From assembly GCA_905178155.1 (NCBI GenBank), contig CAJINV010000007.1:1-64000 (forward strand): a stretch of DNA of 64,000 nucleotides. The letters are read 5' to 3'. Shown piece after piece: positions 26,575-48,730 of the stretch. The notes under the pieces were generated by a model. That model saw nothing but the letters and a program-made list of their open reading frames with translations, had not been told where the DNA came from and ran no database searches. Both the position numbers and the translations under genes were made by a program. The DNA comes from Amoebophrya sp. A120. Taxonomy: Eukaryota > Protista > Dinoflagellata. Numbering within the stretch: the stretch's first letter is position 1; each line of letters begins with the position of its first letter.

Positions 26575-29500
26575 TTACTTTTCCCACGTCAGCGTCAAAG
26601 TTTTTTTCTTTTTCGAGAATTTTACGACAAATGTGTCCATTGAGAAGTCCGGTAGTGGGCCCACAATCTCCTCCCCGATTTGCACCTCCCCCGTTGGCTG
26701 CGCTCCCACTTCCGGACAGGCGGCCACGTCGAGCGGCCCGATAGCGACGGTGTACTTCGTCCCATCGCTGTCTGGTTTCGTGATGCCGTAATCCGTACCT
26801 TGATACGTAATTTTACTGATCCTTGAAGTTCTTGTTGACCTCGTTGGTGATTTTGTTTTTGATGCCGGAAGGGGGGCGGCAATAGGGTTGCTCGCTGAAG
26901 AAAGCGCTCCTCCTGATTCGTCGGAGACCATGACCGTCGTAGATGTAACAGAACTACCAGAACCTCCACTACTGCCATCCTTTTGCACTGGTAGTTGTTT
27001 TTCCCGTCTACTTTTTTCTGCTTCGTCCATCGAAGAAGATGAAGAGGAACCAGAACCCTCCATGAACATGATCTCAGCTCCGCCTGTGCCCCCGCCCGCT
27101 TTTGCTGTAGATTTTGAAACAGTTGAAGCGGAGGTAGAGGTCTCTTGCTCATCCTTTGCGGCAGGTTTTTGTTTTGATGTTGAGCCCCCGGCCGTTACAG
27201 TCGCAGTTGAAGCGGCGCCGGGGCCGGCCGTAGTGGGTGTTGATTTCATCTTGTTGTCCCCTGCTGATGATTTCGCTGCTTTCTTGTTACCTTTATCTCC
27301 ATCAGTTACACCTTTCTTCTCCGAGGCCGCCACGATCTTCTTGTCAAAGCTGAATGCAGACCGGGTCGGTTTCACTGGATATCCACAGAAAAAAACCAAT
27401 CCCTATCCATTTTTTGCATGACAAACACAGGACTTTATGCGTCTTTCGCATGACAAGTTGGATGTGGATGAGTGTTTTCTCCTGGATACTGGCCCACCGG
27501 TCTCTCCCGCAGCCGCCGCTTGTTCAGCTTTCACCGATTCTATCAACTCCTTGCTCGGCTCGAAAAGCAAGAGTGTTTCGGTGGACGTTTCGACGTTCTC
27601 ATGCGATGCTGATGCAGTGCGCGCGGCCCCTGCCGAAGTAGATTGCTCCGCATTAGAAATGCAGTAGTTGATCCAAATAACCCGCACCTGCTGCTTCACT
27701 TCCTCGGAGAACAGTTTCACATTGACCCGTTCCCAGATATATCCAGTGCAAATATGATGTCTGGGGCTAGAAAAGTGGAAGTTGTAATGCGTGTCCTGCA
27801 TTTGTAGAAAATCAGTGTTGCGTGAGCAGCAGAAGGGCCGCTTCCGTTGTCATGCGAAAACGCATACGCAATTTGTAATGCGTGCTAGACATTCAGAAAG
27901 CGTTTCGAAAACTTGTCATGCTTGGCTGTCATGGCAAGCGTTGCAATCAGCAGCAAATCAGCATCACAGGTTCTTTCCAGACCTAAACATATTTGCACTG
28001 CCTAAGATTTGAAACACCAGCTCTGCCTGCTCCAAGTCGGAGAACACGTTTTTCCCAGTGTCAAAACAGTAGCACTTGTGGAAACAGTCGAGTAATTCTA
28101 CCACTTCGACCTCGATTTTCGCAAATTTTCCCGACGATGAAGCTGGTCCAGGGATTGATTTTTTCTTCTTTGCCTGTCCTGAAGTAGAAGAACCACCAAC
28201 ATTTTTACTTGCCGACATCAGTTTCTGTTCCGTCAGCGTCAATCCATACTGTTGACTCCGTTGATTCAGCCTCTCCGACAGCATTTCGCAGAGTAATTCA
28301 CTGTATGGTAAAACCTTCGCCAAAATCTTCGCGAATCTGTCGTAGGCGTCCGCGATTTCGCTAAAACCCGTGAACCCGTTTGATTTTTCCTTGATCGCCA
28401 TGGCGTATTTGCGGTAGACGTTGGCAAAGATGGAGAGGGCGAAGTAGAGGAGAATTTCTTGGAAGAAGAATTTCAACTCTTCAACCCTGTCGTTGAAACA
28501 GGTCGATTTACTGTGCTTCGTCTGTTCGGATATCAAAAACCGCAGTTCCACGAACCGCTGCAGCGGGATCTTTTCGTACTTGATGTTCCTTTTAATATTT
28601 GCGGTTCCGTCCTCCGACGGTTTATTTCCTGTCGCAGAAGCTGGTGGTGACCCATCCAATATCTCCGCGAATCTCCTCTTCAAATCCGTTGGCAATAGGT
28701 CCAAAAACCACTCCGCACTCAAAAACCCGCTATGCAGAAACGCGTCCAGCTTCTGCAGGCAAAACCGCTCCAGGTCGTTGCAGCAATCTTCCAAATCAGC
28801 GATTTCCAGAATTTTCGCCGCGTGCCGGAGTTTGTCTTCGACGGCTTCAGTGGTTCCGAACACTGCTTTTTCAAATTCCGCACGGAAAGACTTGTTTTCC
28901 GCGTTGAAACCCCAGTTGGTCAACAACTTGTTCCGGACGGACAATGGGCGGAGAACCTCGCAGTAGCTGTCCAAGAGCTCGTCGCCATCGTACAGATCCC
29001 GAATAGCACGAACGATGAGCCAGTCGTCGCAAATCACACGATGGACCGTGGGCAAACAGCCGTGATTCGTGTACGCACCGTGGAGCCACAAGGCGGATCG
29101 CTCGACATCGGTGGAAACTTTCATAGGGACGTTGTAGGTGTCGACGGTCTGCAGTGTGTGGGTGTTTGTAGTGAGAATGTTCTCGATCAACTCCGTATGG
29201 TCTACTTTTTCCGAAGATTTCGTAATATCCACGGTATCCGTTTTGACAAGAACTCCTGCTTCTGCAGCAGCGGCACCAACAGAAACTGCTAATGTCGGCA
29301 AAACCGTCTCGGATTCCTTCGTCCCGTCCGACAGCTGCCAGAAATCTGCAAGTTGTTGTGAAGAGGGACAAGCTGCTGTCGTGTCTGTGGAAGACACTTC
29401 TGAACTTCTCGATTTCAAAATCTTCAATTTCTCCTCCGTTTTTTCCACCAGCAACTCGTTCTTCCCAATCACAAACGCCTTCTCCACCGTCAATAATGTA

Positions 29501-30540
29501 CCCGCGGGGAGGAAGAAATTTTCACCATCTTGTTCTTTGCCGCAGCTCGTATTTTTCCGCACCACCAGCCCCCGGCCCTTACCGGGAATGAGCTCGATTT
29601 TCACGTTTTCGTGCACAAAATTCGTCAGTTGCCCGCACCCCTTGCAGTCCTTCAAACCCTTCACCGTCGACCAATCCCAGGGCTCCGTGTAATACTTCAT
29701 GAAGTCCAAGGCGAAAAATTTGCTGTTCGGAAATTTGTAATGCTGGCTGGTCAGCTGCAGTTCTTTCGCGATCAAGTCCATCGAAAGCCCGAACCAGAAC
29801 CCGGAAACCAAAAAACTGGCAACGGCGGCGGGGAAATCCTGCAAGGTGCGCTTGCACTGCCCCTTCCGGAAGAAGATTTTCTGCAGGAATTCCTTCTGCT
29901 CCTCGGATTGTTGAACGGCTGATGTCGACAGGACGGTCGTTTTGCCGAGAATGTCGGACTTGATAATGTCGTCAATAGTACTAGTGGTGTCGGCGGACGG
30001 GGCTGACGAAGTTGTCCTGGTAGAATCGGCCCCCGGGGATGGTAATTTCGCGTCGAAGTCATCTTTGAGCAGCAACTTAGCTGAAATTTCATTGCAAATG
30101 GATTTCCACTCCTCCAGAACGTTGAATTCTGGATGTTGAGATTCATCATCACTTGCAGCAGTATTTCCATTTTTTCGCAAGACAAGTTCCAAACATTCGT
30201 CTAAGTCCGCATCCGCCTGTTCCGGGCAGCGCAACTTGAGCCGGCAGAGGGACCGACTGAGCAACTGCTTGATAAGCTTGGTCGTAGTTGCGGTTCCTGC
30301 ATCTGGAGCTTGTTCTACTGCCGTGGTGGTTTCAACCTCCGTTACCGCAGACGAAGTGCTAGACCACTCTACTGAGTCCTCCGAAGCCGTTGCTTTCAGC
30401 TCCGCAATCGCCTGGGAGTAGAGGTCGTCCGCTTGTGCCAGGTCGCCCGCCTGAAAAGCATCCCTGGCGACGAAAAACACACACTTTTCCTCCGATTTCT
30501 CCTCCGGCTGAGGAGGCTGGTTGTAGCCGGGGGGAAACAT
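26575..30540 (-). CDS. TPR- and SET-domain protein (SMYD-like lysine methyltransferase) with a C-terminal CS/PIH1-like motif
   Basis: TPR-like helices (ADDLYSQAI, FFRKGQCKRTLQDFPAAVASF); SET motifs PGKGRGLV, YTNHGCLP and IVRAIRDLYDGDELLDSY; ends VKFSKKKKTLTLTWEK; two introners removed in frame. Confidence 0.85.
27380..27488. mobile_element. TIR introner, family D (short)
   Basis: TATCCACAGAAAAAAAC...GTTTTCTCCTGGATA; flanks CTGGA/CTGGC; joins GGP to VKPT. Confidence 0.82.
27740..28004. mobile_element. TIR introner, family A
   Basis: TATCCAGTGCAAATATG...CATATTTGCACTGCCTA; flanks AGATA/AGATT; joins FQI to WERV. Confidence 0.85.
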
Positions 30541-31049
30541 GATTCTGCTACCTGCTTGCTCGTTGGCCTTGGTTACCAGACGAGGAAAGACAGAACAAGG
30601 ACTTAAACTTGTCAACTTGTCGACTTTGACTCTACTCTGCACGCTTATATATACACACCAATTGTAAAATGTCCTTTACATACTATAGCAGGCGTCACAC
30701 TCCTGCGTCGGTGCATAGGATGAGGCAAAAATCTAAATCTGCCAGGGAGGACGAGGATGACTCTTAGACTTAGCTTAGGAAACCTGTGCATGACTGTAGT
30801 TCATCTGCGCTCAGTCATTGATGTGCTCTCGACACAAGGACAATGGACAGCCAAAGCGGATGCAACAAACTGGTGGATGCCCAACCGTATTGGCGAACAT
30901 CCTCGCGAACAAATTTTCCAAACGAGGGCAAACATTTGGCCTCTTCATGTGTCCATGGCGCATACATACTCCCCCCCGTAGAAATAAGTAAACCGACCTG
31001 ACAGACAGACACAGATGATCGGTGGACAGGACGCCCTTCCAAAGTTACA

Positions 31050-31542
31050 GGCCTACGCATCTCTGCGAGCATCGCAGCGGCAACCAAAACGCCCGGCCCC
31101 CCCGCACGAAGAGGCGAAGCGAGGCCTGCCTTGAGAAGCACCATAGGCGCCGCGGGAGAAAAGCTGCCAGGGCCGCGCGCGCCGGCGCAGATAGTTCGCC
31201 GAGGGTGGGAGCACAGGCACACCGGCAGCGGCGGGCCGGGGACGCTAGTCAGGCGAGCCAGGAGTAGAAGACACGGCCGCGCGGGCCGGCGCGCGGCGCC
31301 CTTCAAGCGGCCACACCTCTGTCACCCCACCATAATAGGCCCCCAGCTGGCTCACAACGCACCGCAGAGAGAGAGCAGGGCGAGCGGCCCACCTGGTCGC
31401 AATGAATCAATAGCCGACGGCCGGGCCCCGGCGGGGACATGGCCAAGGCAGGGGGTTGACGGGAAGGGCACTGCGTGGCGCGGCCCGGGGGCCGCCAGCC
31501 TATCGCGAACGGGCCCCCAAGGGGCGGCGGCGTGAGAGATCC
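31050..31542. other. GC-rich island, left part (flanks the large element)
   Basis: Composition like the other islands; ends at the left inverted repeat. Confidence 0.6.
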
Positions 31543-31839
31543 GTTTGGCGAGATCTTGGGGTCGCCGCTTCTGATGAGGATTAGCTTCCGGATTTCTTCC
31601 GGATTTCTTTGGAAAAAAATTTTTCGGGCTATTTGGCAGTTTACTGCTATGCTTTTGGGTGTTCCGACTTTTGCTATTCACGTTCCCAGCGTCGGAAATC
31701 AGGTGTCAGATCGTTCGTAGCTCGATTCTCGTGCGAGAACGGGCCTCGTCGAGTTTCGGCACCCCGATCCCCCCCTGTTAGGCCGCCCCCGTCTCGCTCG
31801 GCCATTTGGCCGAGCGGTTAAGGGGTGTAGGTGTTTCTT

Positions 31840-32640
31840 CCAGTCCCTTTTCACCCTTCGTGGGGCCTATCCCCTCGCCGATGCGATCCGATCACCCGTC
31901 GCGGCTTCGTTCGAACGTGCGAAGCCGTTTAGCCCCACTGGTAGTGCATCGAGATGCGATCGGCAGTCCCTTTTCACCCTTTTTGTGTTGTCTTCCGTCC
32001 CCGCAGCGATCCACGCAGTCGCAGCTACTATCGAAAACCGCCCGCACTACGTCTTGTCTTCTGCAAAGAGAGAAGACGTTGTTCCGGCCGTTTCTCAGGT
32101 GTTGCAGCACTCGCCCATTTGGGCGAGTTGGTAAGGGGCCGAGTTCGTTGTTCCGGTCCCTTTTCACCCTTCACGGGGACCGAAGGTTCGAAGCCCAATG
32201 TTGGCTTTTTTTCTTTCGGTGCGGCTTGTGCGACTGAAAGGAAAAGCGCACTACTAGGACAAGTAGGGACGGAGGGGCGAAAGTGGATCGACCTCGAAGG
32301 CCGAAGTACTTTCACACGACGGCACTCGCCCATCTGGGCGAGTTGGTAGAGGGAGGGGATGCTATCCCCAGTCCCTTTTCACCCTTCACGGGGATCGAGG
32401 GATCGATACCCAGCATTGGCGTTTTTTCTTTCGGTACGATTTGTGCGACCGGAAGGAAAAACGCACTACTACCACGAGGAGGGACGGAGAAGTGAAAGTA
32501 GACCAACCTCGAAGGCCGAACTACTTCCACGTAAAGACACTCGCCCAACTGGGCGAGTTGGTACAGGGTGGAGATGCTATCTCCAGTCCCTTTTCACCCT
32601 TCGCGGGGATCCAGGGATCGATGCCCAGTGTTGGTGCTTT
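31840..32640 (+). repeat. Left subterminal array, ~215-bp units with a palindrome
   Basis: GTCCCTTTTCACCCT at 31843, 31966, 32156, 32371 and 32586; CTCGCCCA-NN-TGGGCGAG at 32110, 32325 and 32540. Confidence 0.9.
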
Positions 32641-33186
32641 TGGAAAATGGAAGCGAAGAAGCAAGCCGTCGGGATTGAGAAAGAGAAGCCAAGATAGAAG
32701 CGAAAGAAAGAACTAGATACTGATCGTCGGTCTGATGCGAAAGCACCGCAAGAAACTGCTCCTCCTTGTTTTTTCTAAGTATCTGTGTTCGTTTTTTAGA
32801 TGGGAAGCGAGAGAAGTCGAGTCACGGGCGACGGGGGGCACGAAGTGAAGGTTTTTTTTGGTGAAGAGCGTGTTTTTTGTCCGGCCGGAAACAGAAGCCA
32901 CCTAGCATCGATCGCCGAGTTTTTTGCCAGAGTCCCAACACCGAACAAGGCCTGCACGTTATGAAAACCCAGGTAAGATACAAATTTTGATCGTAGAGAT
33001 CCACCACCTATCTACAATACTCACATGTTTCATACGCGGGCGATCCCGCGTAGCAGTCCGTCCGCTCCCCAGTAACGCGATGCCTGTGTGGAACGGATAG
33101 CGGCAGGTGCGCATTCGTGCGACCTCGGAAAGCGGAACAACTACTTCTTCTCGAGCAGAACAACTACTGCTACTTCGTCGCCCGCG

Positions 33187-36100
33187 ATGTCGAAAAAGCC
33201 GGTGGACCCCGCGAAGCTGGAGGAGCAAAAAGCGGAAGCGAGTCTGTTTTTCAACACGACGGCGCTCCTGCACGCGCGGAAGCTGTGGAAATTCGGCTAT
33301 CTACTTTGCGACTCCGCTTTTAACATCGCGCAGTCGTACTCTGCGGATTGGAGTTACAAAATAGTACACTACAGGTGCGAAATAGATGGCACCACGCAAC
33401 AAGCACTACTATTCGAGAATAGTATTCGCGGCCGCATCCGCGTGTACGCGCATATCATGGTGAGCTTCGTGTGCATCACCTTTGCCATGGGAGGAACAAA
33501 TACGATGCTAGGACATGTTGCACTACCTTGTCACGCCGTGTTGTTCCCATCATCGTCGGACTTTTCGAAGCAGAAGCGTGGTAGCTCGGGCTTCAGGGGG
33601 TGGAGCGAAGGATATGAGATTGCGGATTTGGTTTGGACGATGAACAACCCCGCGATCTACTTCAGCGCCTTTCCGAAATCCACAATCAAAGTGTGGACCC
33701 CCGCGACCGATTCAGGAGGATCCACAATATCGACCCTTTTTTATTTAGGGTCGTTCTTCCTTGCGACGGAGGCCCTAAAAAATTGCGTGATGTGGACGGA
33801 TCGCTGCAAGAACCATCAGGCCGCGCTCATCACCAAGAGCGTCGCGGAGACCTATTTGGCGATGTGCGGGCTTGATCCGATCGGGTGGCAAAAACGACTA
33901 TTTTTACAAGTAAGATTTCAAGTAGCTTTGTACTTCGCCCCTTCTCGCACTTTTTTATCATGCAAAAAATGTCTGTTTTGTATTGCAAAATGTAACAACT
34001 CGCATCACAAATTACCAGGTAACCTCCGTGAAACTACTACAAGAAAAAATCCACGCGCAACTGGACCACGTTGCCCGGTGGATAGGCGAGTGGGATCAGC
34101 AAACGCCGATGCCACGCGACGCGGCGCTGAGCGGGTTTTTAGACCGTTGTCATTTTCCCGAGGACAAGAAGAAGCTCATCCGCAAGTGCTCGGCGAAAGC
34201 ACAAACACTGGTCGTACCACACCAATGCAGGCACCAGTGTTTACGCAACCTACACTCCTGTTACCGGGGCTTTCGAGCCCCGGTATGGACCCGATGGCTC
34301 ACAATCCAACAGGCTCTGGGCCAAATAGCGGTTTGTTTAGCGATATGAAAAGACAAAAATAACTAGCACAAAGCGCAGCCGGAAGCATGACACAAAGCAG
34401 GCAGATTGAGTTTTTACGCATGACGGATTACGATCGCAGTATTGGTAGCTATCTTCGTGCTTGCTTTGTGCTAGTTATTTTTGCATGTGCATACTCGTTC
34501 TTCATGGGGAGACTATTCTGTGGGTTAGGTCCCAGAGTGCAATTTGGAGCCGAACACGTGTTGGAGCATGGGTTCCAAATAAACATGCGTGGAGACACAG
34601 GTACAAACAATTCTAGCATGACAAACACGATATTGGGCGGCGTTTCTCATGTACAGCATCGCTACCCCTCGCATGATGACCACGAACTACAAATTCCGAA
34701 TTTGTAATGCGTTTCTTCACCGCAGCCGAACTAACACACTACAAACTCGAACAGGTCCGCAATTTGTGTTCATAGTTGTGAGCTGGTTCGTCATGGTGAT
34801 CATCGGGCCCGTCGAACATTATAATGCTGCGATGTTGAAGGAGGACTTGAGGCAACGGACGAAGCTGGAGCTGCGAAAGCAATTTGATCAAGACGTCATG
34901 GAGGTCATTAACTACCTGTACAACAAGGAGAAAGCGCACACCGACCTGGCTTTTCTTCTCTGCGGCATCGGAATTGGGGCGGTGGCGTTTGACGAAAAAC
35001 AGGAGCAGCTGGTACTTTTGAAAGTTGCGTTTCTTGGATACTGTGTCGCAATTTGTCATGCATTTTTTGCAATTTTTGCCATTGCAACTTCAACATAAAA
35101 ATTTATCAGATCGAGTTCTGCAGACTGAACGCCCAGCTTTGCGTGTGGGTCAGCAGGTGCTTGCTACATTACCGCGATGGAGCAACTGATATGCGCGAGA
35201 GGTGGTTGGACATGGCGAGTACCAACCTCGACAGCGCGATAAATTTTTTGCAGAAGAAGAAGCACACTCCGTACCTGAGTGACGACCCCGGGTCGATTAG
35301 TCTACACACGGTTGCGCGGTGGTGCAAGAACCTTCCGCCGCTGACAGCGAAGAATCAACTGAGTGAGCTGGTGGAGTACTTGAAGGGGCGGAATCGCACG
35401 ACGCGGAATTGCGAAAAGCGGGCTGGGCGATTCAAGTACCACACGAAAACTATGGACGGAAAGACCTCAACAATAGCCCAGTAGTACCAGTGCTACAGAA
35501 GCGCTTGCTTTCATGCTTTGCATCGTGTTTGTCATGCATGAAATAATAACACTTCTTCGTCTGTGCAGTGCTTCCCCCTTTCGAGGGGCACGGCGCCAAA
35601 TCTGTCATGCATTTTTCACCCCTCTTTCGGGGGAAGAAAGACCAAATTTGTCATGCGTAATCGCGTCCCGTTCCGAACTCCGTTTATAAAATGAAAGCAA
35701 GCAGCAATAGCACCGTGTTCGCGGTGCTATTCCTCGTTTTTTTCGTGGTATAGGCGGAGTGAAAGGCGGAATGAAGAGTATTCCGGGCTCGGACTGCGCC
35801 CTTAACAGGGCGGACTTTCAGAACCACTCTTCCACCGCGACAGAGGACCTGCAACAACATCAGCCTGCAGAGCCTGTGCTGCCTTCTGCAGAGCCGGCCC
35901 CGAAACGGGCGTATGCGGGTGTGCGAGCCATAGACGCCAAAAGGGCGGACCAGACGTACGAGCCCGGTTCTATGCCGTCGCAGAAGGACGTGCTGAAGAA
36001 GACCACCAGCAGAAACAAGTTACGCAATACAAATTTCCTGCTCATGTGCAAAATGCATGGCAAATCTAAAGCAAGTTTCAGCATGCCGCTTGTCATGCTG

Positions 36101-38324
36101 AATAGGGTCGGAGTACAAGTCTGTCATGCAGAAACCGAGTTCGTACTTGTGCGGGAAATTTCCCATGGATACAAGTGGAACGAAGACGATAAGCATGAGA
36201 AGCTGCGGCACCATTACATCGCGGCGGAAATGGACAAAGAAAAGCGGAAAGAAGAAATCCGGAAGATGTCGGAGGCCGAGATCGAAGAAGTGGACAAAGA
36301 AGAGAAGCGGCCGCTTATTATCTGTCAGCGGGAAAGCGGATTCTACCAGGCGGTGGAAGCGGACGTGACGAAGCGGTACCAGAGTGAAACCTTCGACGCA
36401 ACCAAATGGCTTCCCGCCATGTGTAACCGGACGAGCCAGCAGGTCGGGCAGGAAACGCCGCCGGAAATAACGGTCAAAGGACGGCCAAAGCCCGCAAGTG
36501 CAGTGCTATTTGCGCGGTATTTGCGGTCGCGGAGAGCGCGGGTGCGCGAGCTGCGGAAGGAACGCAAAGAAGCAGGTGTTGCGGAGGGCGAATTGAATGA
36601 TCTGAAGCTTGCGGTGGAGGAAGATGACGATACGCAAGACAAATTGTAGAACAGCCCTGCTTTTGCGTTCAGATTTTGTATTTGTGATTGCATGACACCC
36701 TGCGAAAGATACGCTTTTGCTTTTCGAGAACAGCAGCAACATAGCATGACAAGCTGGCACCAGATTTGTCCTCTTGGAAAACACGAGCACAGCGCTTCCG
36801 TGATAGCAGACTTGATCGTGCTGAAATACAAAAGCAGGGCGCTCTACAAGTTTGAACGGCATACGCGAAGATGAAGAGCCGGTGGAGGATGACGAAGATC
36901 CCAGCAACGACGCAGCGGCTCTCATCCCCGAGGAGGTGGCGCAAGGACGGGACGTCTGCGCCCTGTTATCGCCGTTTGTGATCACCAGATTCCTGAATAC
37001 CAAGACGAAGCAGTGGGTGCCGTTTCTAGTCTCCGACTGCGTATTGACGCCCGCCAGCTTCAAGGCAATCAAGCTGCTCTACACGGGGAAACCGGAAGCG
37101 TGGCACAAAGCGACGCTCTACACATCCCACAAGGACTACCTGTTCTCTGACAGCGAGGTTACCGACTACGACCTCGACACAATCTCCGAAATGTACACAT
37201 TGGAGATAAAGGACGCGGATGATACAGGCCGTGTGCGCTTGTATTGCGGAAAGCAGGCGCAGCTGCTGAAGCCCGGTGGTCCGAAGGTGAAAGCGGGGAA
37301 GGTGGAGGAGAAGGTGATCAAGGAGGACTGGGCTTCTGCTACCAACGAGCAGAAGGCCGCACAGATGGATCAGCTACAGAAGTTTTTGCAGCCCGTTTCC
37401 GACGCTGCTTGTGCACCAAAGGCGAAGGACAAGATTTTCGTGATCCAGGAGAGCAGAATGGTGGCGCTTCCGGTCCGCGCGGAGGAACTGGATCCGCAGG
37501 CAATCCGCGTCGAAAAGGAAACCCAATCTGGTAAAGCGACGCAAACACAGTCGAATCTGGAAACGCAGACGGGATCGCAGGCTACCGCGAAGTCGACGAT
37601 CGAAATTTCCGGCAAGGAGTACAAGCTCCACATCTCCGCGCGACAAGAAACCATCAATCAGTTGGAACCGATGAGAATTGATGGCTTCAAGATAAAGGAG
37701 GCAAGCTCCGTCTCCGACCGCAAAACCGAAGGGCGAGATAGCATCCGGCTGCAGATTTTCGCGTTGGAAAAGAAGTTGAAGCAGAAGCTGGCAAAGCAGA
37801 TCTTGAACCCGAACATTACGTGGCACTGCCAGTCGAAGGGGCAGACCTTGGGGCGCGGTATGCGATTCGACGAAGCCGACGGTCCCCGCTGGACTGACAC
37901 GTGTTTGTCGGTGTGGGGTGTGCGCGCCCGTTTTATCGCCGAAAAAGCTGGCGACAACACCGACTACGAGCGGAAATGCAGTGATGAAGACGTCGAAATC
38001 CTCAAGCAGCAGCACAGCCTGTACATGAATGACGTGCACCAATGGGCCCAGACCCGCGCCGGTGGCTGCACAACGAAACTGAAGGAGTTGGAATACGAAA
38101 TGGAGATTGACAAGCGCGCGCTGCAGTGCCTCGATCCGCGGAATACTACCAGCGAGTGGCTTGACTTCCGTGACGCCACGGAAGGGGAGAAGGACATCAG
38201 TACCAAGTTGGTCGAGCGGCAGAAGGAGAAGAACTCCAAGAAGAATAAAGGCGGCTTTCTGCCCACGGTTCCGGAAGTGGAGTACGAAGCTGCTGTGGAG
38301 GTCCATGTGCCGGCGATTGCGTGA
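33187..38324 (+). CDS. hAT-like DDE transposase with long C-terminal extension (multi-exon, roughly 1200 aa or more)
   Basis: Motifs in hAT order: YLLCD (D1), PATDSGG (D2), RCKNHQAAL (CxxH), PVWTRWLT (RW) and TTRNCEKR (putative E). GT-AG introns at ~33910-34018 and ~35012-35109. Removing introners 35451-35752, 36021-36171 and 36631-36863 links ORFs 35053, 35759 and 36852 in frame. The segment 34310-34755 is unresolved. Confidence 0.72.
35451..35752. mobile_element. TIR introner within the transposase gene
   Basis: TAT...ATA ends; AATAGC at position 22 from both ends and a shared GCTTGCTTTCAT; removal plus 5 nt gives HTKTVKGGMKS in frame. Confidence 0.72.
36021..36171. mobile_element. TIR introner within the transposase gene
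   Basis: TACGCAATACAAATTTCCTGC...GCGGGAAATTTCCCATGGATA; perfect direct repeat CAAGT. Confidence 0.8.
36631..36863. mobile_element. TIR introner within the transposase gene
   Basis: TACGCAAGACAAATTGTAGAACAGCCCTGCTTTTG...CAAAAGCAGGGCGCTCTACAAGTTTGAACGGCATA; removal plus 5 nt gives DDEDEE in frame. Confidence 0.85.
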
Positions 38325-38419
38325 TGGAGCGACGGCGTACCTGATAGAGTTTTATTTGTAAACTATGAACAAGAATCTCAACTCTCTCTCGTCTCCGTTT
38401 TTTCTCCTGAAAAAGGAGA

Positions 38420-38720
38420 TCATTTTTGAGACCAAAAAATGTCCTCTGAATAACTTTTGAATATCTTTTGATTTTTCAGTTTCGAAGCAGCAAAGTGAAA
38501 AAGATTATCTTTTTTTGAGCTCTCTGAATATCTTTTTCGGAGAGCTCTGTTTATCTTTAGGCCGATGGTATACTCGGATTTCCAGCACCTTCTGAATATC
38601 TTTTTCAGAGGCTTCTGAATAACTTTCAAAAGATATGTAAATGGTGCTTCACTACCTCCGAACCTACTCACTTTTTGAGCTCTCTGAATATCTTTTTGGA
38701 GTCAAAAAATGTCTCGTTTT
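38420..38720 (+). repeat. AT-rich dispersed repeat cluster (TCTGAATA(T/A)CTTT)
   Basis: About 5-6 copies of the motif plus two copies of CAAAAAATGTC just after the transposase stop. Confidence 0.75.
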
Positions 38721-38905
38721 GGATGATCGTTTCTTCTAGAAAAATCTAAGTTAAAAGAAGCTCTCTCAGACAACGCAACTCTTCTTGCAAAAGGTAGACT
38801 AGGAACTAGCAAAATGCCTTCCTGTAGTAGTGTAGTACTGCCAGCGCGCTTGCGTGATACCAGCGGAGCCGACGACCATGGACTACCTGGAATGGACCTT
38901 TGACC

Positions 38906-39052
38906 ATGGAAACCTTCAACGCGCACGGGTACTACTCCACCTACTGCGCCTCTGCTGTTACCGTGGGCCTCGTGGACTTTGGTGCGTACTTGACGTTGGT
39001 GACCATAGCCGCGTACTTGCCGTTGCTGGTGTTGCGCGGCGTGCTGGCATAG
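38906..39052 (+). CDS. Possible 48-aa hydrophobic micro-protein
   Basis: METFNAHGYYSTYCASAVTVGLVDFGAYLTLVTIAAYLPLLVLRGVLA*; mostly G/C-ending codons within AT-rich flanks. Confidence 0.35.
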   Translation: METFNAHGYYSTYCASAVTVGLVDFGAYLTLVTIAAYLPLLVLRGVLA

Positions 39053-39866
39053 TTATTAATTGTAGAATAAATAGAATTTACAACAAGACTGCGAAAGCAT
39101 TATAGTAGGTTGAAAGTAACATAAGAACAAGTAAAAAAGTACAACACACGCATGTAGTAGAACATACACAACAGACATTGGGAAAGCATACACGGCAAAG
39201 ACCGTCCTTGACTGATATAGAGCAGAAAACAGCCTGCAGTCGCATACAGATTTGCTTTGTACAGGAATAGTTTCCGGGTGTGAGCACGCAATATGCATGA
39301 CAAACACCACGAAGAGAATTAGTGTCTCATCATCGCGACGCAGGAATAGGGAACATAAGCACAAAAGTCCACACGTAGAATGGAAAAACAACATCTCTGT
39401 ACCTCTGGAGTCTTGTGCTCCGCTGCTGGTCTGAGTGCCATCTTTTCCGTTCATTTCGTATCAACACTGCTAAGGACGAGCGACCTGATGTTAGTTATGG
39501 CTACTTTGCTTTGATATCACATCTCGCAAGCACTGAGCTGGATCTCAATTGATAGCTCTGAAAAAAAAAGCACGAAAGCGCATGTGTAACAGTGTCGGTT
39601 CTTTGTTTATGAATTTGAGATGAGGAGGCGCTACTGAACTCCAGCAATTCTTCTTTTCAACTTGCTACTACAGCAATTCTTCTTTTTCCACGCACCAATC
39701 GGCCCACAAGAAATCGCGTTTTTTTTTGCCTAGAATAGCGATGACCTTAAACGGGCAGTTTTCACTTTGCACTTCTAATCAAAACCGTAGGGAGAAAAAC
39801 TTCAACAATTTTTGCGTGAGGAAACTCAACCTTCTCTGAGTTCCTCTTCCTTCTGAAAAAGCAATA

Positions 39867-42800
39867 ATGGCACTGCGTCGTCAGCCGACCGACCAAGTCG
39901 CCCAGGAGTTTGTCCAACGGGCGCAGATGGACGTATAATTTTTGGTACTTGATGCGTTTTTCTGATGCAGAATTGATGTTGCTTTGGAAACAGATGACTT
40001 ATGGACTCTTCAGAAATAAACTGAATCTACATCAAATACAGCCCGACGCTACCCTCCTGGCCGCGATTGAACACGTCTATCGTCAAGAAGGCCGCGTGCG
40101 TACTCGGTTGACTTCTCGTGTGCAGTTTTTGAGCCGCCTCGACAGCGAGCAGATCAACTCGCAGCTGTCGTGTCCGTTTGAGCAAACATATGCATTACAA
40201 ATTACCCCTGCGCTTCACTCTTTGCATGATGATAACGTCGCGATAAAAAACAGCTGGTCATGCGTGATTGTCATGCGTTACGAGCATAGTTTACACCTTT
40301 GGCGAGGCTGTGGCGCAGCGCAAGTTTCCCTTGCGTACTTTCATTGCCCGCCACATGCTCCGCCTGCCCGGACCGGTGAAGCTGTGCTTGCACTCGCGCA
40401 CGGACTACCTGCACCGCGAAATCATGACCATGACCACCCGCGATTTTAACGGGATCACTCCCGTCCAGGAGTTACGTGTGGCCGTATTAATGCATGAGTT
40501 ATTTGCTTCAAATTTGCGTCGATAAGAGCGCGTTTTTCTGCGCATGCAAAAAGATAGATCTGTCATGCAAAAAGCACCACTCGATGTGATGAATTCGTGA
40601 AGTGTTATCGACATGAACAAAAAACCACTACAGAACCACCTTGTGGGTCGTTATCAATCCATAAGTGATGAGCAGTCGGCGGCGCGTGCTCTCGCTTCCT
40701 GCGCGAAGTTAATGCCCCTGTTCCGCTTCGAGGCCAGCAAGGTGCAGCTGGAGATGGCTGCCGTCCACGCGCTGTGTCAGGGTTCCTTGTATCGTCGCGG
40801 GAACACCCAGCAGACCCGCACCTTGTCCGACTTTTCTGCCTGGTGTCAGTACCTGTTTTGCAAAGAGAGATTTTTGATTTCTAGGTGAACAACAGATGCT
40901 CCTGCATGACATGCAACGCCAAAACTCCTTTTAGAAATGGAAATTTGTAACGCAAAAAATGATACCGTAACAGGGCCCAGGGTCGCGGTCGCGCCTACTG
41001 CACCGGTGCTACTCCGTTGACCGAGATCAAGGAGAACTGCGAGTTGATCCAGGGTGCCTTGTTGAACAAGCAGGTCCGCCAGCTGGAGACCATCGCTGTG
41101 AACGACGTGCTGGGAGCCGGTGACCCGGATCAGCCCCAGACGGTCCAGGAGCTGTTTTTCGAGAAGATCTCCGAGGTACAGTATAGTGAGTGCTTTTTCT
41201 AGAAAAAAGTATCAGGCTTCTCATGCTTTCCGTAAGAGGATCATGCCAGTCATAGGAGGAGAGAGAGATGCTTCTTTTTGAGACAGATTTGCACGCTTTC
41301 GCGTACCTTTGCCGCGTATAATTCTATCTTTATCATTTCAAAACTCCATACCTTCAGGTGCTAGAGAAGGCTGCCACGGATGAGTTGTTGATCGTCGTGA
41401 AGAATGAGATCAAGGAGTTGCTCCGTACTGGCAACCCCACTGCCACGGACATGTATGTGAGTGAGAACATAAGAAGGTCACTTGAGATATGATGCTCGTG
41501 CTTGATAACCTCGTGTCATGGTGGCCATGCGAAGACATGCGTGGAATTTTGAGCTTTGTCATGCAGAAACAGAATATCTTAGAGCTCGGTCAGCTGTATC
41601 GGTATTTCGAACAAAAAAGCTCGCCAGACATGCACGTAAATCGAGCATCATAGCCCATCCCGCCTTCTCCACTTTTGCTTGCATAATCTCCAGTCGGTTG
41701 AGCGTGCGTTCTCCACGTCCCCGTGCCCGGAGATGTTGTACTGGAACGCTGCTGCCGCCGCGCACTCGTACATGGGCGCTTCGGATATCGATGACCTGGT
41801 ATGAAAGTGCTTCTTTTTGAATTGTAGAATCAGCGATGCCAAAGCGTCTTCATTACGACCTATATTCGCACGCTGCGTTGCTGTTCAAAAATCCGGAGCA
41901 GTCGTTGTTTCTTTACGCATGCAGGACGACAATTTCAAAACTTAAACACAACTATAAATAACAACAGCGCCAGATGTGGTTTCGTACGTACTTGACCAAC
42001 GTCATCAACTGGATGGGCCGCGACTCCGGTCCGCACCCGGTCTTGCAGTGCATGGACACCTTGATCACCCGCGTTCAGGAGGGGTTTCCGAAATACCAGA
42101 AGCTTCCCCAGAACACCTTCTTGGAGATGACCGGCCGCTTTCGGAGCCAGCTCCTCGCCATGGACCAGAACCGTACTGATGGAGAATTTTCCACGTTGAA
42201 GGGGCAGTTGACCGCCATGACGACTACCTGCGAGAACGCCCTTCCGTTCGACCAGCGCGATGGGATTCTGGAGATGTCCGGCGTCAGCGACTTCTTCGTG
42301 AACTTCCCGGTCCCGGATCGCAGCCCGGTGAAGCCGTTGCACGACTTGTGTGTCATGATCTGCAACGTCTTCGTCAACGGGCCGGAGAACCTGAACATCC
42401 AGAACATCGCCCGCGATGCTCTGACGATGAAGAACGAGTACGATCAGAAGTTCGTTGTGGCGTTTCCCTCCATGATCGACGCCGCGCAGGGATTGCTCAC
42501 GGCTTTCGTGAAGATGATGCAGTCCACGGAGGAGGGGGCGCTCCGGACGCACCTTTCCAACGGCACAATAAGACTAAGAGCGAAAAGATGATGTTGCGAG
42601 GGAGGAGTGTTGATTTTTGACGCGAGCGCTACAACCACTCAGAGGCGCGTATGAAAATCGGTCCCGTGCATACAAGTTTCAATTTCAACTACACAAAACT
42701 ACTCACAGGTCAGTACGACCAGGCCATGGCGGAGCTCAACCGCATGGAGCTCCCCATGGCGTTCTTGGACATGGACGTCCGGCAGCGTCTTTACAAAGAG

Positions 42801-43004
42801 ATCGAGAGGGAGCGTCCCGTTGCCGGTGCCGCCAACGCTGCCGGTGGTCCCGCGGGGAACGGTGAACCCGCGCCCCAACGACGACGCATCAACATCAACT
42901 TGCGCCAGGCCGTGCCGCAGCAGCCCGCTGCCCAGATTGGTGCGATCCCGAATCCGGATGATGATCCCACGCTCAATGCGGACATTGCGGAAGTCGACGT
43001 GTGA
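39867..43004 (+). CDS. Multi-exon cargo gene of unknown function inside the large element
   Basis: MALRRQPTDQVAQEFVQRAQMD then a GT-AG intron then PDATLLAAIEHVY; further GC3-rich exons in ORFs 40268, 40613, 41017, 41974 and 42651, separated by AT-richer CATG-motif introns; ends IAEVDV*. Confidence 0.7.
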
Positions 43005-44371
43005 TTTTGCTATTCAGAATTAGAAATAGTACTGTCGTCAAAGTAGAATTGATAACCACGCGTACCGCGCTGGCACCTGTATGATGATGATTACACCTCG
43101 GCACTCTTTTCCTTTGACTTTCGACTATACTATACCTGAGAAGGGGCAGTGGTAAATCTGCCATGCTTAGTGGCCTTCTTCTGTTTCTACAACAAATGCA
43201 CAATTCCACTTTGGCCATCAATTTTCGATGATAGAGTTTGTTGTATGATGTAACAGCACAAGTGATTTAAGCCCCTACACTTTGCGCACGGGGTGCAATT
43301 TAGTAGGAGTTACTAGTTTGAGTGAAAAGCCGTTGGGTTCTAGTGACAAACATATTCCAGCACTCACATCGTGGTGGAGGATACAACTTCTACACAGGGG
43401 GTCGAGAGTCTAATTGTAAAAATTATTATTATTGATTTTTTTAGTGTGGAGGTGTGAGTTTCTGATGACTAGTTCTGCACTGTACATAGAGTTTTGCAAT
43501 TCGGAATTGGTGTAAAGCCAGAGTCTGAATTGTCAAATTTCACTTTGGGGTTGGAAAAGAAAAATACAAACGCGCTACACATTCTAGGTCGTAGTACTTT
43601 TATTGTTCGCGTTACACATGGCACAAGCAGCACAGGTCGGTGGAAGAATTCGGTGAAAGAACTTGGAAACTCGGTCGAAAGACGCGCGCACATGAAGGCT
43701 TGGTAGTGATGGAGTCGGAGACTCGGTGTGAGTGTGTGTTTGTATGCCAGAGCTGGCAAGCGTCGTCGGTGTGCCCGTAGCTGCGATAGTGAAAAGGCTC
43801 GTGGTGATGGAAAAGGGGACTCGCGAATAGAACAAAAGAGCCGCTAGCTCTCACATCGTACACACACTCTTCTATGCTAATCGTCCTTCATAGTAGCAAC
43901 TCAAACCAGAACGCTCTTAGACCAGTTTCGCAATCTCAGCCGCTTCTCAAAAAAAAACGATCATCTTGTATACGTAACTTCACAACTTCGCAAAATCTCG
44001 CTTCTACTTCACATCTATCACAAGAAAAAACACAATCTTCACATCTACAGCGTACATGCTCGCGTCATACATAGCTTTACACTTTTTACATTCAGACTTG
44101 TAGCCACACATGCACACTTGCTGATACAAAATGGAAGCCGCCTCCCCGGGCGGGATATAAGTTCGGGCGTATTGCAAAACTGGCAAGAGATCGCGCGCAA
44201 AGAAAGAAGTTCTTACTCATGCATAGGTGCGTAGTCCGTTCATACACATACACGGTTGCTCCGTCCGATCGATCTGATTATGCTTTTCGTGTGGACATAC
44301 AAACACACTGCAGGTGCGACTAGTACTACACAGCTACCAAAACACGCTTAACGCAGCTCCCGCTGAGCTTT

Positions 44372-45050
44372 GCGATTGTGGCGAAGGGCGATTGTGGCGA
44401 AGGGCGACTGTGGACCGCCCGGTCGACGGGCAATTGTGGATGTGGCGAAGGGCGACTGTGGATGTGGCGAAGGGCTGTTTGGAAGAAGGGCGATTGTGGA
44501 TGTGGCGAAGGGCGATCGTGGATCCGCCGCCGACAGCTGCGATTGTGGACGCGACAGTGGCCACTGCGGGTGGAGCGTGGAATGCGAGATGCGGGTGGAG
44601 CGGCCGACGCGAAAATGTGGATGCGACAGTGGCCACTGCGGGTGGAGCCGTGGATGCGAGACGGCGGTGGCGCGGCGACTGCGAAATGTGGATGCGGCAG
44701 TGGCCACTGCGGGTGGCGCGGTGGACGCGAGACGGTGGTGACACGGCGGCTGCGAAATGCGGATGCGGCAGTGGCCACTGCGGGTGGAGCGGTGGACGCG
44801 CGATGCGGGTGGAAGTGCGGCTGCGAAATGTGGATGCGGCAGTGGCCACTGCCGGTGGAGCGGTGGACGCGAGATGCGGGTGGAGCGGCCGCTGCGAAAT
44901 GTGGAAGCGGCAGTGGCCACTGCGGGTGGAGCGGTGGATGCGAGACGAGTGTGGAGCAGCGGCTGCGAAAAGTGGATGCTGCAGTGGCCACTGCGGCTGT
45001 CGCGGTGGATGCGACATGCGGGCGGAACGACGGCTGCGGAATGTGGACTG
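44372..45050 (+). repeat. Right subterminal arrays: TGTGGCGAAGGGC repeats, then 7 x ~71-bp units with a palindrome
   Basis: CAGTGGCCACTG at 44555, 44627, 44698, 44769, 44840, 44911 and 44982 (period 71-72). Confidence 0.93.
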
Positions 45051-45600
45051 CGAATGGAGCCTCCAGCTGTAGCTCTGCTACCAACGCGTGGAGGCGTGCT
45101 GCTGACGGGTGGATGTGGATTGCGGATACCAGCGTGCTGGCGACGCGCAATCGCAACTGCGGACGGAGCGGAGACGGGACGCGGAAAATACGGCGCTCAC
45201 TGCGACGACAGCGGGGAGCGGAACTGCAGACACGACTCAAACATATGCGGAATCTAGTTTACAGTGAGTATTGTGAAGCTTGCATGAGGTGGTGGTTCTC
45301 TCTGATCAAAAAAAAAAGCAGGTGGCGAACACAAATCCGAACGGCGACATTTACGGGCGACGACCATCATCGCGTTGTGCTTTTTCTAATCACAAAAAGC
45401 TCAAATTGCGTGCGTAGACTTGTAGTCTGCGGCGATGCGGGCATGATGCCTAAACAAGAACACCTTCGCGAGCCGGCGATCCCCACCTGATGTTGGTTGA
45501 GGTGGGAGGCCGGCCAGTTTGGTGTTCGCGAAAAAAATACTTTCCAAAGAAATCCGGAAGAAATCCGAAATCCGGGGCCCATCAGAGCGCGGCGGCGCCA

Positions 45601-46620
45601 AGAGATCCTGCAGGAATTCCCTGGCCCATCGCAGCGCGGTCACCGATTCCAAACGCTGCCGCGCCGGCGTGGGAGGGCGCTCGACCAGCCAGGCCGGCCC
45701 CGCCAATAGACCCAGGCGGGAGCCTGGCTGCCCCAGAAACAAGGCCGACCGGGCCGGGCGCCGCCGCCTAGCTTCCACCGGCCTGCGACCCCGAAGCGCG
45801 GCCGGCCGATCGAAGGTGGCCACGCCGGCAATGTCAACAAATGGGCGCAGGGCGGCAAGCGGGGGGGGCCCTAAGCACATAGATGCGCGCCCCCCCGCGA
45901 ACACTGACTCACTGCTCGCGGAATCCGGCCCACGAATCTGATCCGGCGCCGTGTGTGTCGCCCCTTCTGGGAGCACACCGCGCCGCCGCGCGCCCATTTA
46001 CGCAACAGCCGGAGGCGCAACACCTGCGACCTCGATATGAGTGCGCCGCCGCACCGCAGGGCGCCCGCGTGTGCAACCCTTTCGCCGGCTTGCTTCATGC
46101 CTTTTCTGGCCAAGCACCCACCCCACCCCGGACCGGCGGCATCCACGTGCCCGGTGCACTGCCCGCCCCTCCCCTTCCTCTGATGCTTCACAAGCTTGGC
46201 CCCACTGCTCCCGCGTCATATCGCCCCACCTTGCTTGGCTCGTCAGCGGGAAGGAAGCGCGCAAGCGCCGGCGCTTTGGCGTGCCCGCCTACGAGGCATC
46301 TCCGCCCTAGTCTTGGGGGGGTCGGATGGGTGGCGGCCGGAGTATGTGGCCACAAAAGCCCCGACCCTTCAGGGGGCGCGTCGTCGCACAGGCCCCACGC
46401 GCGGGCTCCCTGCTGCCTTCGCCTTCTTGCCTGCGCGGCGGCGCTGCCACCGGGTGCGTCCCTGCTTGCTAGCCGCATCCATCGGCTACGTATCCGGCGC
46501 CTGTCCTCTTCGGTAGGCTTCCCGGGGTGGCAGCGCGGGCGCTAAGGCTTTCACGCCCAAGCCTTGGAGGCCGCGCGCCAACTGCACGGCAGGGCAGGGC
46601 GCCGGTCGGAGCTCGGAAGT
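45601..46620. other. GC-rich island, right part (flanks the large element)
   Basis: GC-rich composition resumes immediately after the right inverted repeat. Confidence 0.6.
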
Positions 46621-46988
46621 GGGTCATTGTGTATGCTAGTTTGACACCCGAACAGAGGTTGCACCAGAGAAAAGCTCCTGAAGATTTGCGAACAAAATTT
46701 TGAGCCGCTATCGACCCTGTGCACATAGGCAGTGGCTAGCTCTGAGTGCGTTCGTCGTGCTCATTGGCTATACACACGACAGCAACCTTCGCGACAGAGA
46801 GACGATTTTTGGAAAATGTCTTTCACAAAAAACTGCGAGGGGTTTTCTTCATCAAAATCCGTCCGCGCACCCTGTCTCTGTTGCTTGGGTACAAAACGCC
46901 GCGCATTTCTATTCTCTTTCGCCCAAATCCAAGCCACCCTCGGCCTTGCAAGAGCATCAAACTCTTCCACCTCCACGACCCCATCTCG

Positions 46989-48730
46989 TCATCCTTCCCC
47001 TCCCCCGCCTTCCTCCTCCCAGCTATGCGTCATTTCCAGGGGCCCGCCAGATTCCGGATCCCGCAGTCGCATGCCGGTCAACTCCACAGTTCTCGCGTAA
47101 ATCCGCTGCACCTCCTTCCATTCCTCTTTCAGTAACTCGTTGCTCGCCGGGTGTTCGTAGTCATTGTAAAGTTGGAGGGACAAGGTCTTCGTATCAAATG
47201 CAAAAATGTCTGGGAGGTCTGGAAGATTGTCATGCTAGTCTGGCATGACTCTGCACTCTGTATTGCGCGGCCACCAAGAGGTCCTCTTGCCTGTCATGCA
47301 AAAGCGCAGTTTCTCATGCGAAATACGCATCACAGAAGCACGAAAAAACTTGTCATGCTTGGCGGCGCATTACAGAGCACTTATTGTTCACGGACTTGCA
47401 TCACAAGTTTCCAGACCCAGACATTTTTGCAGTTGATACTTCGATTTCGGAAACAAATCGTCCATGAGCTCCTTCCGCACGACCGACGGGATCGTAGCAC
47501 CACCTCCGCTTCCCCCAAAACCCCCGCCGCCCTGTCCAGTATTACCCGTCATCCCCGGCACGGGCCCCCCAACGCTGCTGTTCTGCGCGACGTTTGTTCG
47601 GAGAAACTGCTGCAAAAAATCTTCCACCATCTTCGCTTTTTGCGCGTAGATTTTTCTTCTAAACTTTCGCTGTTGGACACCCTGCGCAAGCTTTTCCTTC
47701 TCGGCGTATTCTTCGTCTAACTTCGCCTGCTCCCTTATTTGCTCCTCCAAAGCTTTTTTTTCCAAGTCTGCTTTGATCTCCTCCGGCGTCAGATTTTTCC
47801 GCTTCTCCATCTCTAGCTCCACTATGCACTGCAAAAGTACAGTATCTAGTAGAAATCGCATGACAAATTTTCTCAGCATGAAAAATGGAATTTGTCATGC
47901 TGATTTACCTTGGGAATCAGATTTGTAATGCAAGAATGCGATTAGTACGAGTACGATACTTTTGCAAGGCATATCCACCTTCTCACAGTTGTGATTGCTG
48001 TACCGGCAGTTCTCGCACAGAATCCGCCCGCAGTGTGTATGCATTGCAAAGATGTATGGCTCTGGAAATTTGTGATGCGGGACTCGACAATTCTAAGAAC
48101 GTCTCCATTGACGGCCAAGCATGCCAAATTGTTGAGTTGTTAAGACGTGTTGCCTCTTCCTATTTATTCTGCTTCTGCATGACAAACCTTGCACTCTTCG
48201 TTCCAGACCACAACACATTTGCAATGCATAGTCCGGACACCAGAAAGATTCTACCATGGAAGTGACAACAAAGGACATTGACTTGGCGAATCGCTTCGTC
48301 GCCCGGTTTATCAAATGTAAAAATGTTCGGGTCTGGAAGAATGCATGTTTGTCATGCTTGTTTGGCATGACTCTTAAATCTGTCATGCAAGTTACCCAAG
48401 AGCTCTATTTTTCTGTGATGCAGAAACGCAGTTTGACATGCAGAATAGGCAACACCTAGAAGCTCAGAAACTTGTGATGCTGAGCCAGCATTTCTGGCCT
48501 CATCATGAGACGCCACCCAGCATCACAAGTTTCCAGACCCAGACATTTTTACAGTTGATACGGTTCCCGCAGTGCCCGCATTTCGCCTTGACAAATTCCT
48601 TGAAGCTGTCCGCGACGAATTTTTCGATTTGCTGTCGGTGCGGGTACCGCGGGTTGTCCGGGTCTTGCGGGAGAGGATTGCTTGGACCTGAAGAATCGAC
48701 GGCGGTGGAAGAGGAGGAGGCTGCGGCCAT
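46989..48730 (-). CDS. AN1-like zinc-finger and coiled-coil protein (5 exons)
   Basis: Removing four introners gives CGHCGNR...FWCPDCGRILCENCRYSNHNCEKVE followed by a charged coiled coil, all in frame. Confidence 0.75.
47192..47438. mobile_element. TIR introner, family A
   Basis: TATCAAATGCAAAAATGTCTGGG...CCCAGACATTTTTGCAGTTGATA; perfect direct repeat CTTCG. Confidence 0.93.
47823..47973. mobile_element. TIR introner, family C
   Basis: TATGCACTGCAAAAGTA...TACTTTTGCAAGGCATA; perfect direct repeat TCCAC. Confidence 0.92.
48038..48230. mobile_element. TIR introner, family A
   Basis: TATGCATTGCAAA...TTTGCAATGCATA; removal plus 5 nt restores CPDC. Confidence 0.88.
48309..48560. mobile_element. 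TIR introner, family A
   Basis: TATCAAATGTAAAAATGT...ACATTTTTACAGTTGATA; perfect direct repeat CGGTT. Confidence 0.93.

Follow-up and report, generated by a model that had tools for sequence, protein, structure and literature searches.

In the described transposon systems closest to the element reported here, hAT elements have the terminal consensus YARNG, and target site duplications (TSDs) measure 8-11 bp in MULE, 5 bp in Transib and 3 bp in both PIF/Harbinger and CACTA/EnSpm. MuDR carries a second gene, mudrB. The element lies in a 64,000-nt stretch of the Amoebophrya sp. A120 genome (contig CAJINV010000007.1, positions 1 to 64,000), referred to below as the window. hAT families with TSDs of 5, 6 and 7 bp (hAT5, hAT6 and hAT7; 6 bp in hAT6) have been described, and some hAT elements, fungal hAT7 among them, carry a second gene, TET/JBP (PMC12730594). 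The catalytic signature of (C/D)xxH plus W is common to hAT and MULE, the W has a counterpart in Transib/RAG1, and the signature is tied to hairpin formation on flanking DNA (PMC5499845). We conclude, with a probability of about 0.7, that window positions 31556-45601 are one copy of a low-copy, two-gene family of ~14 kb DNA transposons with terminal inverted repeats (TIRs), recently active, in which gene 1 carries a hAT-like DDE-type catalytic domain. The family is previously undescribed and, judged by its sequence relatives, almost confined to the parasitic dinoflagellate Amoebophrya.

We placed the ends of the element by comparison with a second copy, found in a search of the whole A120 genome (115.5 Mb, 401 contigs). 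This copy (C4:5419972-5434000) is 98.73% identical over 14,058 bp by BLAST, has unrelated flanks, and carries a TSD of its own. Where homology to it stops lie the limits of the element proper, which spans 14,046 bp. The termini, TTGG at 31556 and CCAA at 45601, are inverted and fall exactly at the bounds of the repeated unit, and identical copies of GAGATC adjoin both (Table 1). An earlier note on the window, made from its letters alone, had drawn attention to a perfect 27-bp inverted repeat, CGGATTTCTTCCGGATTTCTTTGGAAA, with its two copies 14 kb apart. The repeat is indeed present, at 31589-31615 and 45541-45567, as one part of a longer TIR, an imperfect match of ~70 bp with CGGATTTC repeats at both ends. 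It is subterminal, 33–34 nt inside each terminus, and the asymmetry of the first-drawn ends around the repeat cores (46 versus 33 bp) therefore disappears. Those ends, the left one ~12 bp off, had come with a candidate 8-bp TSD, AGAGATCC, which must be given up: its left copy, at 31535-31542, stands apart from the element, no counterpart is present at the C4 copy, and the true TSD is 6 bp. Strand bias marks the same interval. Long open reading frames (ORFs) inside the element are on the plus strand and almost all of those outside on the minus strand (14 long ORFs), and GC skew is positive only between ~32 and 46 kb of the window, in agreement with the earlier description of plus-strand genes within a minus-strand cluster. 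The element apparently sits between genes.

The same genome holds a diverged, collinear relative on C11, which aligns as DNA (75% identity) at its left end alone, and a second subfamily of three 13.85-kb copies (on C17, C11 and C4) that are 98–99% identical to one another and have termini TTGAG...CTCAA. Each of the six family insertions has a perfect 6-bp duplication: GAGATC in the window, GTCTTC at the C4 copy, AGACTC at the C11 relative, and CATTTG, CTCTCC and CAATTC in subfamily 2. The odds of a chance 6-bp duplication are 1/4096 per insertion, so that six independent insertions exclude chance and mark the element as a genuine TIR transposon whose TSD is 6 bp; a TSD of constant length, like TIRs at the exact limits of the unit, is what class II (cut-and-paste type) DNA transposons show. 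The terminus is kept as TTGRG in three lineages (TTGGG, TTGAG and TTGAG). The two subfamily-1 copies, in the window and on C4, are 140 substitutions and five indels apart (~1%). Thus the copies that the earlier note had suggested seeking in the full assembly exist and fix both the termini and the TSD length. Its reading as a transposon is supported to this extent: the element is large and discrete, has TIRs and subterminal repeats, and moved recently. Exon 1 of gene 1 has 17 matches in the genome, which fall into several diverged lineages, and a genome search for short derivatives carrying subfamily-1 ends found none. The left flank of the element is unique in the genome, and there is therefore no paralogous empty site there.

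Some copies show changes of their own. In the C4 copy, two 4-bp insertions in the last gene 1 exon (equivalent to window 37300 and 37593) break the frame and shorten the open frame, and a 28-bp stretch matching window 39639-39666 is deleted. Five of five exon 1 substitutions between the window and C4 copies change an amino acid, as neutral decay after insertion would give. Another family member is represented by a 6.2-kb stretch that is 100% identical between C1:2823625-2829855 and C12:~1707600-1713800. On C1 the stretch is bounded by an N and by GGGGAAAGCGGGAAGCA-type repeats, and the pair may reflect an error of assembly or else partial duplication in the very recent past. The pair was set aside: its borders are not element termini, and N stands at the junction.

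By tblastx against the C11 relative or subfamily 2, the element is conserved at the protein level only in two genes, both on the plus strand and collinear. Searches were run exon by exon, on genomic positions, and the models of both genes are unjoined predictions from conservation. Amoebophrya A25 protein P0005 (CAD7959423.1) is collinear with gene 1 over window 33736-38225, and the window copy has no stops and open exons throughout. The gene 1 protein of the family is ~1,300–1,650 aa long, with a conserved C-terminal alpha/beta domain, and has the conserved motifs DGT(T/S), TDSGGST, RCxxHQ, P-x-W-(T/S)-R-W-L-T, PVE-x-YN and an invariant E-x6-K (CEKRxGRFK). The C, H, R, W, E and K are invariant in six full-length homologues of 19–30% identity, and C206 and H209 are at least 90% conserved among 19 sequences. 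An exon 1 profile built from six paralogues retrieved 17 proteins from 1.84 billion representative proteins; of the ten traced to a source, Amoebophrya A25 or AT5.2 accounts for six and JGI/Logan contigs for four, so that the sources are Amoebophrya or marine metagenomes. A homologous-protein search with gene 1 gave back the query only, and one with its C-terminal domain gave no match.

Gene 2 has eight matches in the genome, spread over at least five diverged lineages, and every one lies inside a family element; it never occurs alone, and genes 1 and 2 are collinear in every lineage compared. Gene 2 is therefore an integral gene of the element and not the cargo that the earlier note had taken it to be. 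It has no Pfam match, no homologue outside the family in a protein homologue search, nothing usable in the ESM Atlas, and no relation to the long C-terminal tail of AT5.2 protein P0015.

To characterize the gene 1 product, we used two structural models: an AlphaFold2 model of exon 1, with a predicted local distance difference test score (pLDDT) of 72, and a model of the A25 homologue P0005, which is without beta1–beta4 (pLDDT 64.6). The exon 1 model has the topology beta1-beta2-beta3-alpha1-beta4-alpha2, with D66 on beta1, D174 after beta4 and CxxH on the next long helix. In Foldseek against the PDB, its top match is Hermes, a hAT transposase (4d1q; E 2.3e-4, probability 0.99), followed by other RNase H-fold proteins. 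Across the fold searches, the remaining good matches are all RNase H-fold nucleases or transposases. An unbiased wide VIA search with this model found only generic RNase H/ASKHA folds. With the P0005 model, an unbiased VIA search of 48,161 PDB chains placed Hermes 8edg_A first (Z 8.5 over 185 residues); 7fif_A, a helical protein unrelated to it, reached an equal Z. The alignment pairs P0005 24-405 with Hermes 247-586 and runs from just after the second D, by way of CxxH and RW (P0005 153-154), to the helix with the invariant E (390). An all-alpha insertion is found in the RNase H core between the second D and the E, as in hAT, at moderate model confidence. From these models, gene 1 probably encodes a very divergent, putative hAT-like DDE transposase that standard domain libraries miss.

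Several observations weigh against this assignment. Pfam gave no match for the ORFs, the gene 1 exons or the six full-length homologues, and PDB sequence searches with two profiles, Hermes included, gave none either; the likeness to known transposases is not one of sequence. Foldseek found nothing with the P0005 model. In VIA-align, the exon 1 model scores Z 5.3–5.4 against Hermes over 142–154 residues, and up to 7.5 against terminase nucleases. The structural scores are modest overall (TM ~0.29, Z 5.3–8.5, where 7–8 is common background for unmatched models). Finally, two strongly hydrophobic helices follow the RW and draw matches to membrane proteins, which is odd for a transposase.

Further along the protein, a three-helix segment of P0005 (residues 457-520, ~window 35880-36300) matches an HMG box (SSRP1; Z 6.9, root-mean-square deviation 2.4 over 64 residues), and the modelled segment may be a DNA-binding module. 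The region that codes for it contains a nested introner, described below.

A working model of transposition can be put together by analogy with known elements. The N-terminal third of the gene 1 protein probably forms the RNase H-like DDE-type domain of hAT-like build, with RW opening the helical insertion and the invariant E-x6-K on a later helix, followed by a long family-specific C-terminal region. The protein would bind the ~70-bp TIRs and subterminal repeats, and excise the element by double-strand breaks. These might proceed via a flanking-DNA hairpin, as in hAT, MULE and Transib, a chemistry we infer because the (C/D)xxH plus W signature has been linked to it (PMC5499845). Joining of the 3' ends to the target with a 6-bp stagger would leave the 6-bp TSD. 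Gene 2, as the obligatory second gene, may code for a helper protein that binds DNA or acts in regulation, comparable to the second ORFs of Harbinger, CACTA and MuDR.

Tandem arrays lie inside both ends, where the earlier note had seen them: a 215-bp unit repeated 2.4 times on the left (32107-32628), and units of 16, 22, 25 and 71 bp on the right (44372-45052). The left subterminal region holds a more distinctive motif, a palindrome with an 8-bp stem, (G/A)CTCG(G/C)CC-N4-GG(C/G)CGAG, followed ~22 nt on by the 16-mer GTCCCTTTTCACCCTT. The 16-mer is the same in every one of nine aligned copies, drawn from four lineages that do not otherwise align as DNA, and the base before it is A in most copies and G in one. 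Changes in the palindrome stem are compensatory (G:C to C:G and G:C to A:U). The 17-mer AGTCCCTTTTCACCCTT occurs 24 times in the genome, versus zero for a reversed-pattern control. Nineteen of these occurrences are in identified family copies, five of them in the window (31842-32601). The other five are at two C1 loci (C1:1854837-1854989 and C1:16438262-16438551) that the exon 1 search missed, and which may be further or non-autonomous family members. On the right, the arrays of both subfamilies are built on GTGGA/GTGGAGC units, the one in subfamily 2 being of GTGGAGC type and placed as in the window. The 37-bp element downstream of gene 2 is conserved in subfamily 2 (Table 1), the DNA of which cannot otherwise be aligned. 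The palindrome plus 16-mer sites are candidate protein-binding sites or gene 1 promoter elements; more broadly, the transposase or the gene 2 product may bind at the subterminal motifs, CGGATTTC repeats and right arrays. One further sequence, GGCCGAGCGGTTAAGG, has a tRNA-like look and was dropped as a tRNA when Rfam and tRNA scans of the window returned nothing.

Table 1. Features of the element and of the introner-like copies nearby, in window coordinates
Feature	Position	Strand	Remarks
Left TSD copy, GAGATC	31550-31555	.	Adjoins start of C4 homology; identical to 45602-45607
Left TIR, imperfect, ~70 bp	31556-31625	+	Begins TTGGGGTCGCCGCTTCTGATGAGG; CGGATTTC repeats and perfect 27-mer 31589-31615
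Left subterminal region	31791-32641	+	Five motif copies; includes 215-bp array
Gene 1, putative transposase	33187-38324	+	~8 exons, ~1,300–1,400 aa estimated; collinear tblastn with A25 P0005, tblastx with diverged paralogues
Gene 1 exons 1-4, approximate	33187-33912, ~34016-34342, ~34460-34602, 34724-35023	+	
Gene 1 exons 5-8, approximate	35041-35463, 35729-36019, 36176-36646, 36852-38324	+	
Gene 1 candidate catalytic D	33385-33387	+	EIDGTT
Gene 1 candidate catalytic D	33709-33711	+	TDSGGST
Gene 1 candidate catalytic C..H	33805-33816	+	RCKNHQ
Gene 1 candidate catalytic RW	34292-34297	+	
Gene 1 candidate catalytic E	35413-35415	+	CEKRAGRFK
Nested introner, 156 nt	36020-36175	+	Inside gene 1 exon, in frame, stop-free; 5-nt direct repeat CAAGT; non-canonical intron ends
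Gene 2, conserved multi-exon gene	about 39910-43004	+	tblastx, collinear in three other lineages
Gene 2 conserved blocks	40039-40158, 40382-40489, 40631-40843, 40966-41178, 41667-41753, 41974-42591	+	
Gene 2 last exon, possibly	42651-43004	+	
GC-rich element, 37 bp	44131-44167	+	Downstream of gene 2; short palindrome AAGCCGCCTCCCCGGGCGGGATA... (CCGCC...GGCGG); 92% with subfamily 2
Right subterminal tandem arrays	44314-45100	+	16-, 22-, 25- and 71-bp units rich in GTGGA/GTGGC
Right TIR	45532-45601	-	Ends ...CATCAGAGCGCGGCGGCGCCAA; perfect 27-mer at 45541-45567
Right TSD copy, GAGATC	45602-45607	.	C4 comparison
MITE/introner copies	47820-47974, 50477-50624, 52074-52223, 57995-58151, 58376-58535, 61737-61859		

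Could the locus be no transposon at all, but two genes copied by segmental duplication or doubled in the assembly? Copy numbers are low, several lineages come as near-identical pairs or triplets, and the partial copy on C1, identical to C12 and beside N, looks like assembly. Yet homology breaks sharply, exactly at the inverted termini; the six perfect TSDs all differ; and the flanks are unrelated, the left one being unique. The TSD and TIR data effectively refute duplication, and we give it next to no credence. It is improbable, too, that the element is mobile but moved in trans, with genes 1 and 2 as passengers or host-derived genes (for instance, a nuclease or a membrane-associated protein). 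Gene 1 has no recognised transposase domain, its RNase H-fold matches are generic, and the hydrophobic helices after RW are transmembrane-like. Against this, homologues of genes 1 and 2 are found together in TIR-bounded copies wherever ends could be examined; conserved coding sequence in the element is confined to these two genes; the residues of catalytic type do not vary from strain to strain; and no recognisable transposase was reported in A120 by Farhat et al. (PMC7789003). Polinton/Maverick elements were considered for their 6-bp TSD and size, and rejected: only two genes are conserved, neither with a Pfam match, and the set of protein-primed DNA polymerase B, retroviral-type integrase, capsid and ATPase genes is missing.

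We therefore return to the two-gene transposon that probably encodes its own DDE-type enzyme, and to whether it belongs to hAT, as the earlier note had it. What stands of that claim is the D...D...CxxH...RW pattern in a large gene, completed by the late E, and Hermes as the best structural neighbour of both halves of the catalytic region; superfamily membership was not established. An RNase H-like fold with invariant D, D and E is present, as expected of an element-encoded DDE transposase, without a sequence match to any known one. Repbase defines superfamilies by PSI-BLAST convergence (PMC4455052), and the Pfam hmmscan and PDB profile searches (Hermes included) that bear on similarity were empty. 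The hATC dimerisation domain (PF05699) had no Pfam match in the window exons or eight homologues; a six-frame genome search for it was also empty but carries little weight, as 14 control genomes gave nothing either. Pfam likewise found no zf-BED or other zinc finger in the full-length homologues, and no DUF659 or similar hAT domain in these or the window exons. The termini read TTGRG rather than YARNG, and gene 1 encodes a protein roughly double the length that is usual for hAT. A TSD of 6 bp is not the canonical 8 of hAT, yet inside the hAT6 range. The presence of (C/D)xxH after the second D, with a conserved RW, does not by itself identify hAT, since CxxH plus W is common to MULE and the W to Transib/RAG1 (PMC5499845). 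A genuine, very divergent hAT member with an extra gene, for example near hAT6, thus seems unlikely to us. The residue order, the Hermes matches and the recorded hATs with 5-, 6- or 7-bp TSDs or a second gene (PMC12730594) speak for it, as does, as a lead only, the presence of hAT-type Pfam families at ranks 26 and 30 among ESM-Atlas feature neighbours (scores 0.80–0.81). Besides the missing domains and the termini, the retention of gene 2 in every lineage, which is not how cargo behaves, speaks against it. We describe the element as hAT-like in architecture, without filing it as a hAT member, and possibly as a separate deep lineage. In its fullest form, this would be a eukaryotic DDE transposon lineage with the rank of a new superfamily, confined to Syndiniales, tied to hAT, MULE and Transib by fold and catalytic signature only, with an obligatory second gene. 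It would also be the first DNA transposon of Amoebophrya A120 to be recognised as autonomous. That proposal is tentative and short of even odds.

The genome of A120 is also rich in introners, short non-coding elements in genes that resemble MITEs (miniature transposable elements with inverted repeats), with inverted repeats of 8–20 nt and direct repeats of 3–5 nt; Farhat et al. (2021), whose analysis of A120 revealed no transposase, argued on that ground against an ordinary transposase-driven spread of its thousands of introners (PMC7789003). One introner lies within a gene 1 exon (Table 1). At least 40 diverged copies of it are present in the genome (74–81% identity). It occurs in both subfamily-1 copies; neither the C11 relative nor subfamily 2 has it, and their high-scoring segment pairs run through the site. 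It was therefore inserted after subfamily 1 split from these relatives. Taking it out restores ...SRNKWNEDDKHEKL..., which aligns with the paralogues. This makes a clean natural case of an introner landing in frame within a putative transposase exon. Outside the element, the window holds a second family of ~150 bp with termini TATGNNNTGCAAAAGTA...TACTTTTGCANNNCATA (TATG...CATA), six copies of which all have a perfect 5-bp TSD (TCCAC, TGAGT, CTAGA, CCCTC, AGCAC and AGCCA). The idea that the element drives introners found no support, as both local introner families have 5-bp duplications and the second has TA-type termini. It is very improbable that the element or a relative supplies the transposase for introner invasion.

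Two features of the surrounding DNA may be recorded. Just left of the insertion site, on the minus strand, is an uninterrupted 892-aa ORF (27964-30642) with a SET domain (PF00856, E 1.5e-5). GC-rich islands (62–69% GC) are found at 25001-26000, 31001-31555, 45602-47000 and 53001-55000, in a window that is otherwise ~49% GC, and the transposon sits within one such island.

These data indicate that A120 possesses a family of autonomous DNA transposons, seemingly intact and active not long ago, that Pfam searches did not recognise, and the earlier failure to find a transposase is therefore at least partly a problem of sensitivity. To transposon diversity, the family adds a hAT-like catalytic build without a sequence link to hAT, combined with a 6-bp TSD, a partner gene and family-specific palindrome and 17-mer sites. 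With the introners it shares a genome, and one of them sits inside gene 1; it differs from them in being 14 kb long and protein-coding, with a 6-bp TSD rather than 5-nt duplications, and TTGRG ends.

Like PIF/Harbinger and CACTA/EnSpm, the element pairs a putative transposase with a second element-encoded protein and has subterminal repeat arrays, whereas those systems have a 3-bp TSD, other termini, and DDE_Tnp_4 or Transposase_21/24 domains, none of which was detected in the element. With MULE/MuDR it has in common (C/D)xxH, an important W and, in MuDR, a second gene, and with Transib/RAG1 the corresponding W; excision via flanking hairpins is a feature of both MULE and Transib (PMC5499845) that the element may share. 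It departs from both in TSD length and in having no Pfam MULE or RAG1 match, and neither ranked above Hermes in the fold searches. hAT differs in sequence, in its hATC and BED domains and in its termini, and the element in its ~14 kb length, its ~1,300–1,650-aa protein with a C-terminal alpha/beta domain and its obligatory second gene. With hAT (Hermes, Ac, hobo and hAT6) it shares short TIRs with subterminal repeats and an RNase H-like DDE core in which D, D, CxxH and RW precede a late E and the second D and the E are separated by helices; a 6-bp TSD is on record for hAT6 and a second gene for fungal hAT7, and Hermes is the best structural match to both halves of the catalytic region.

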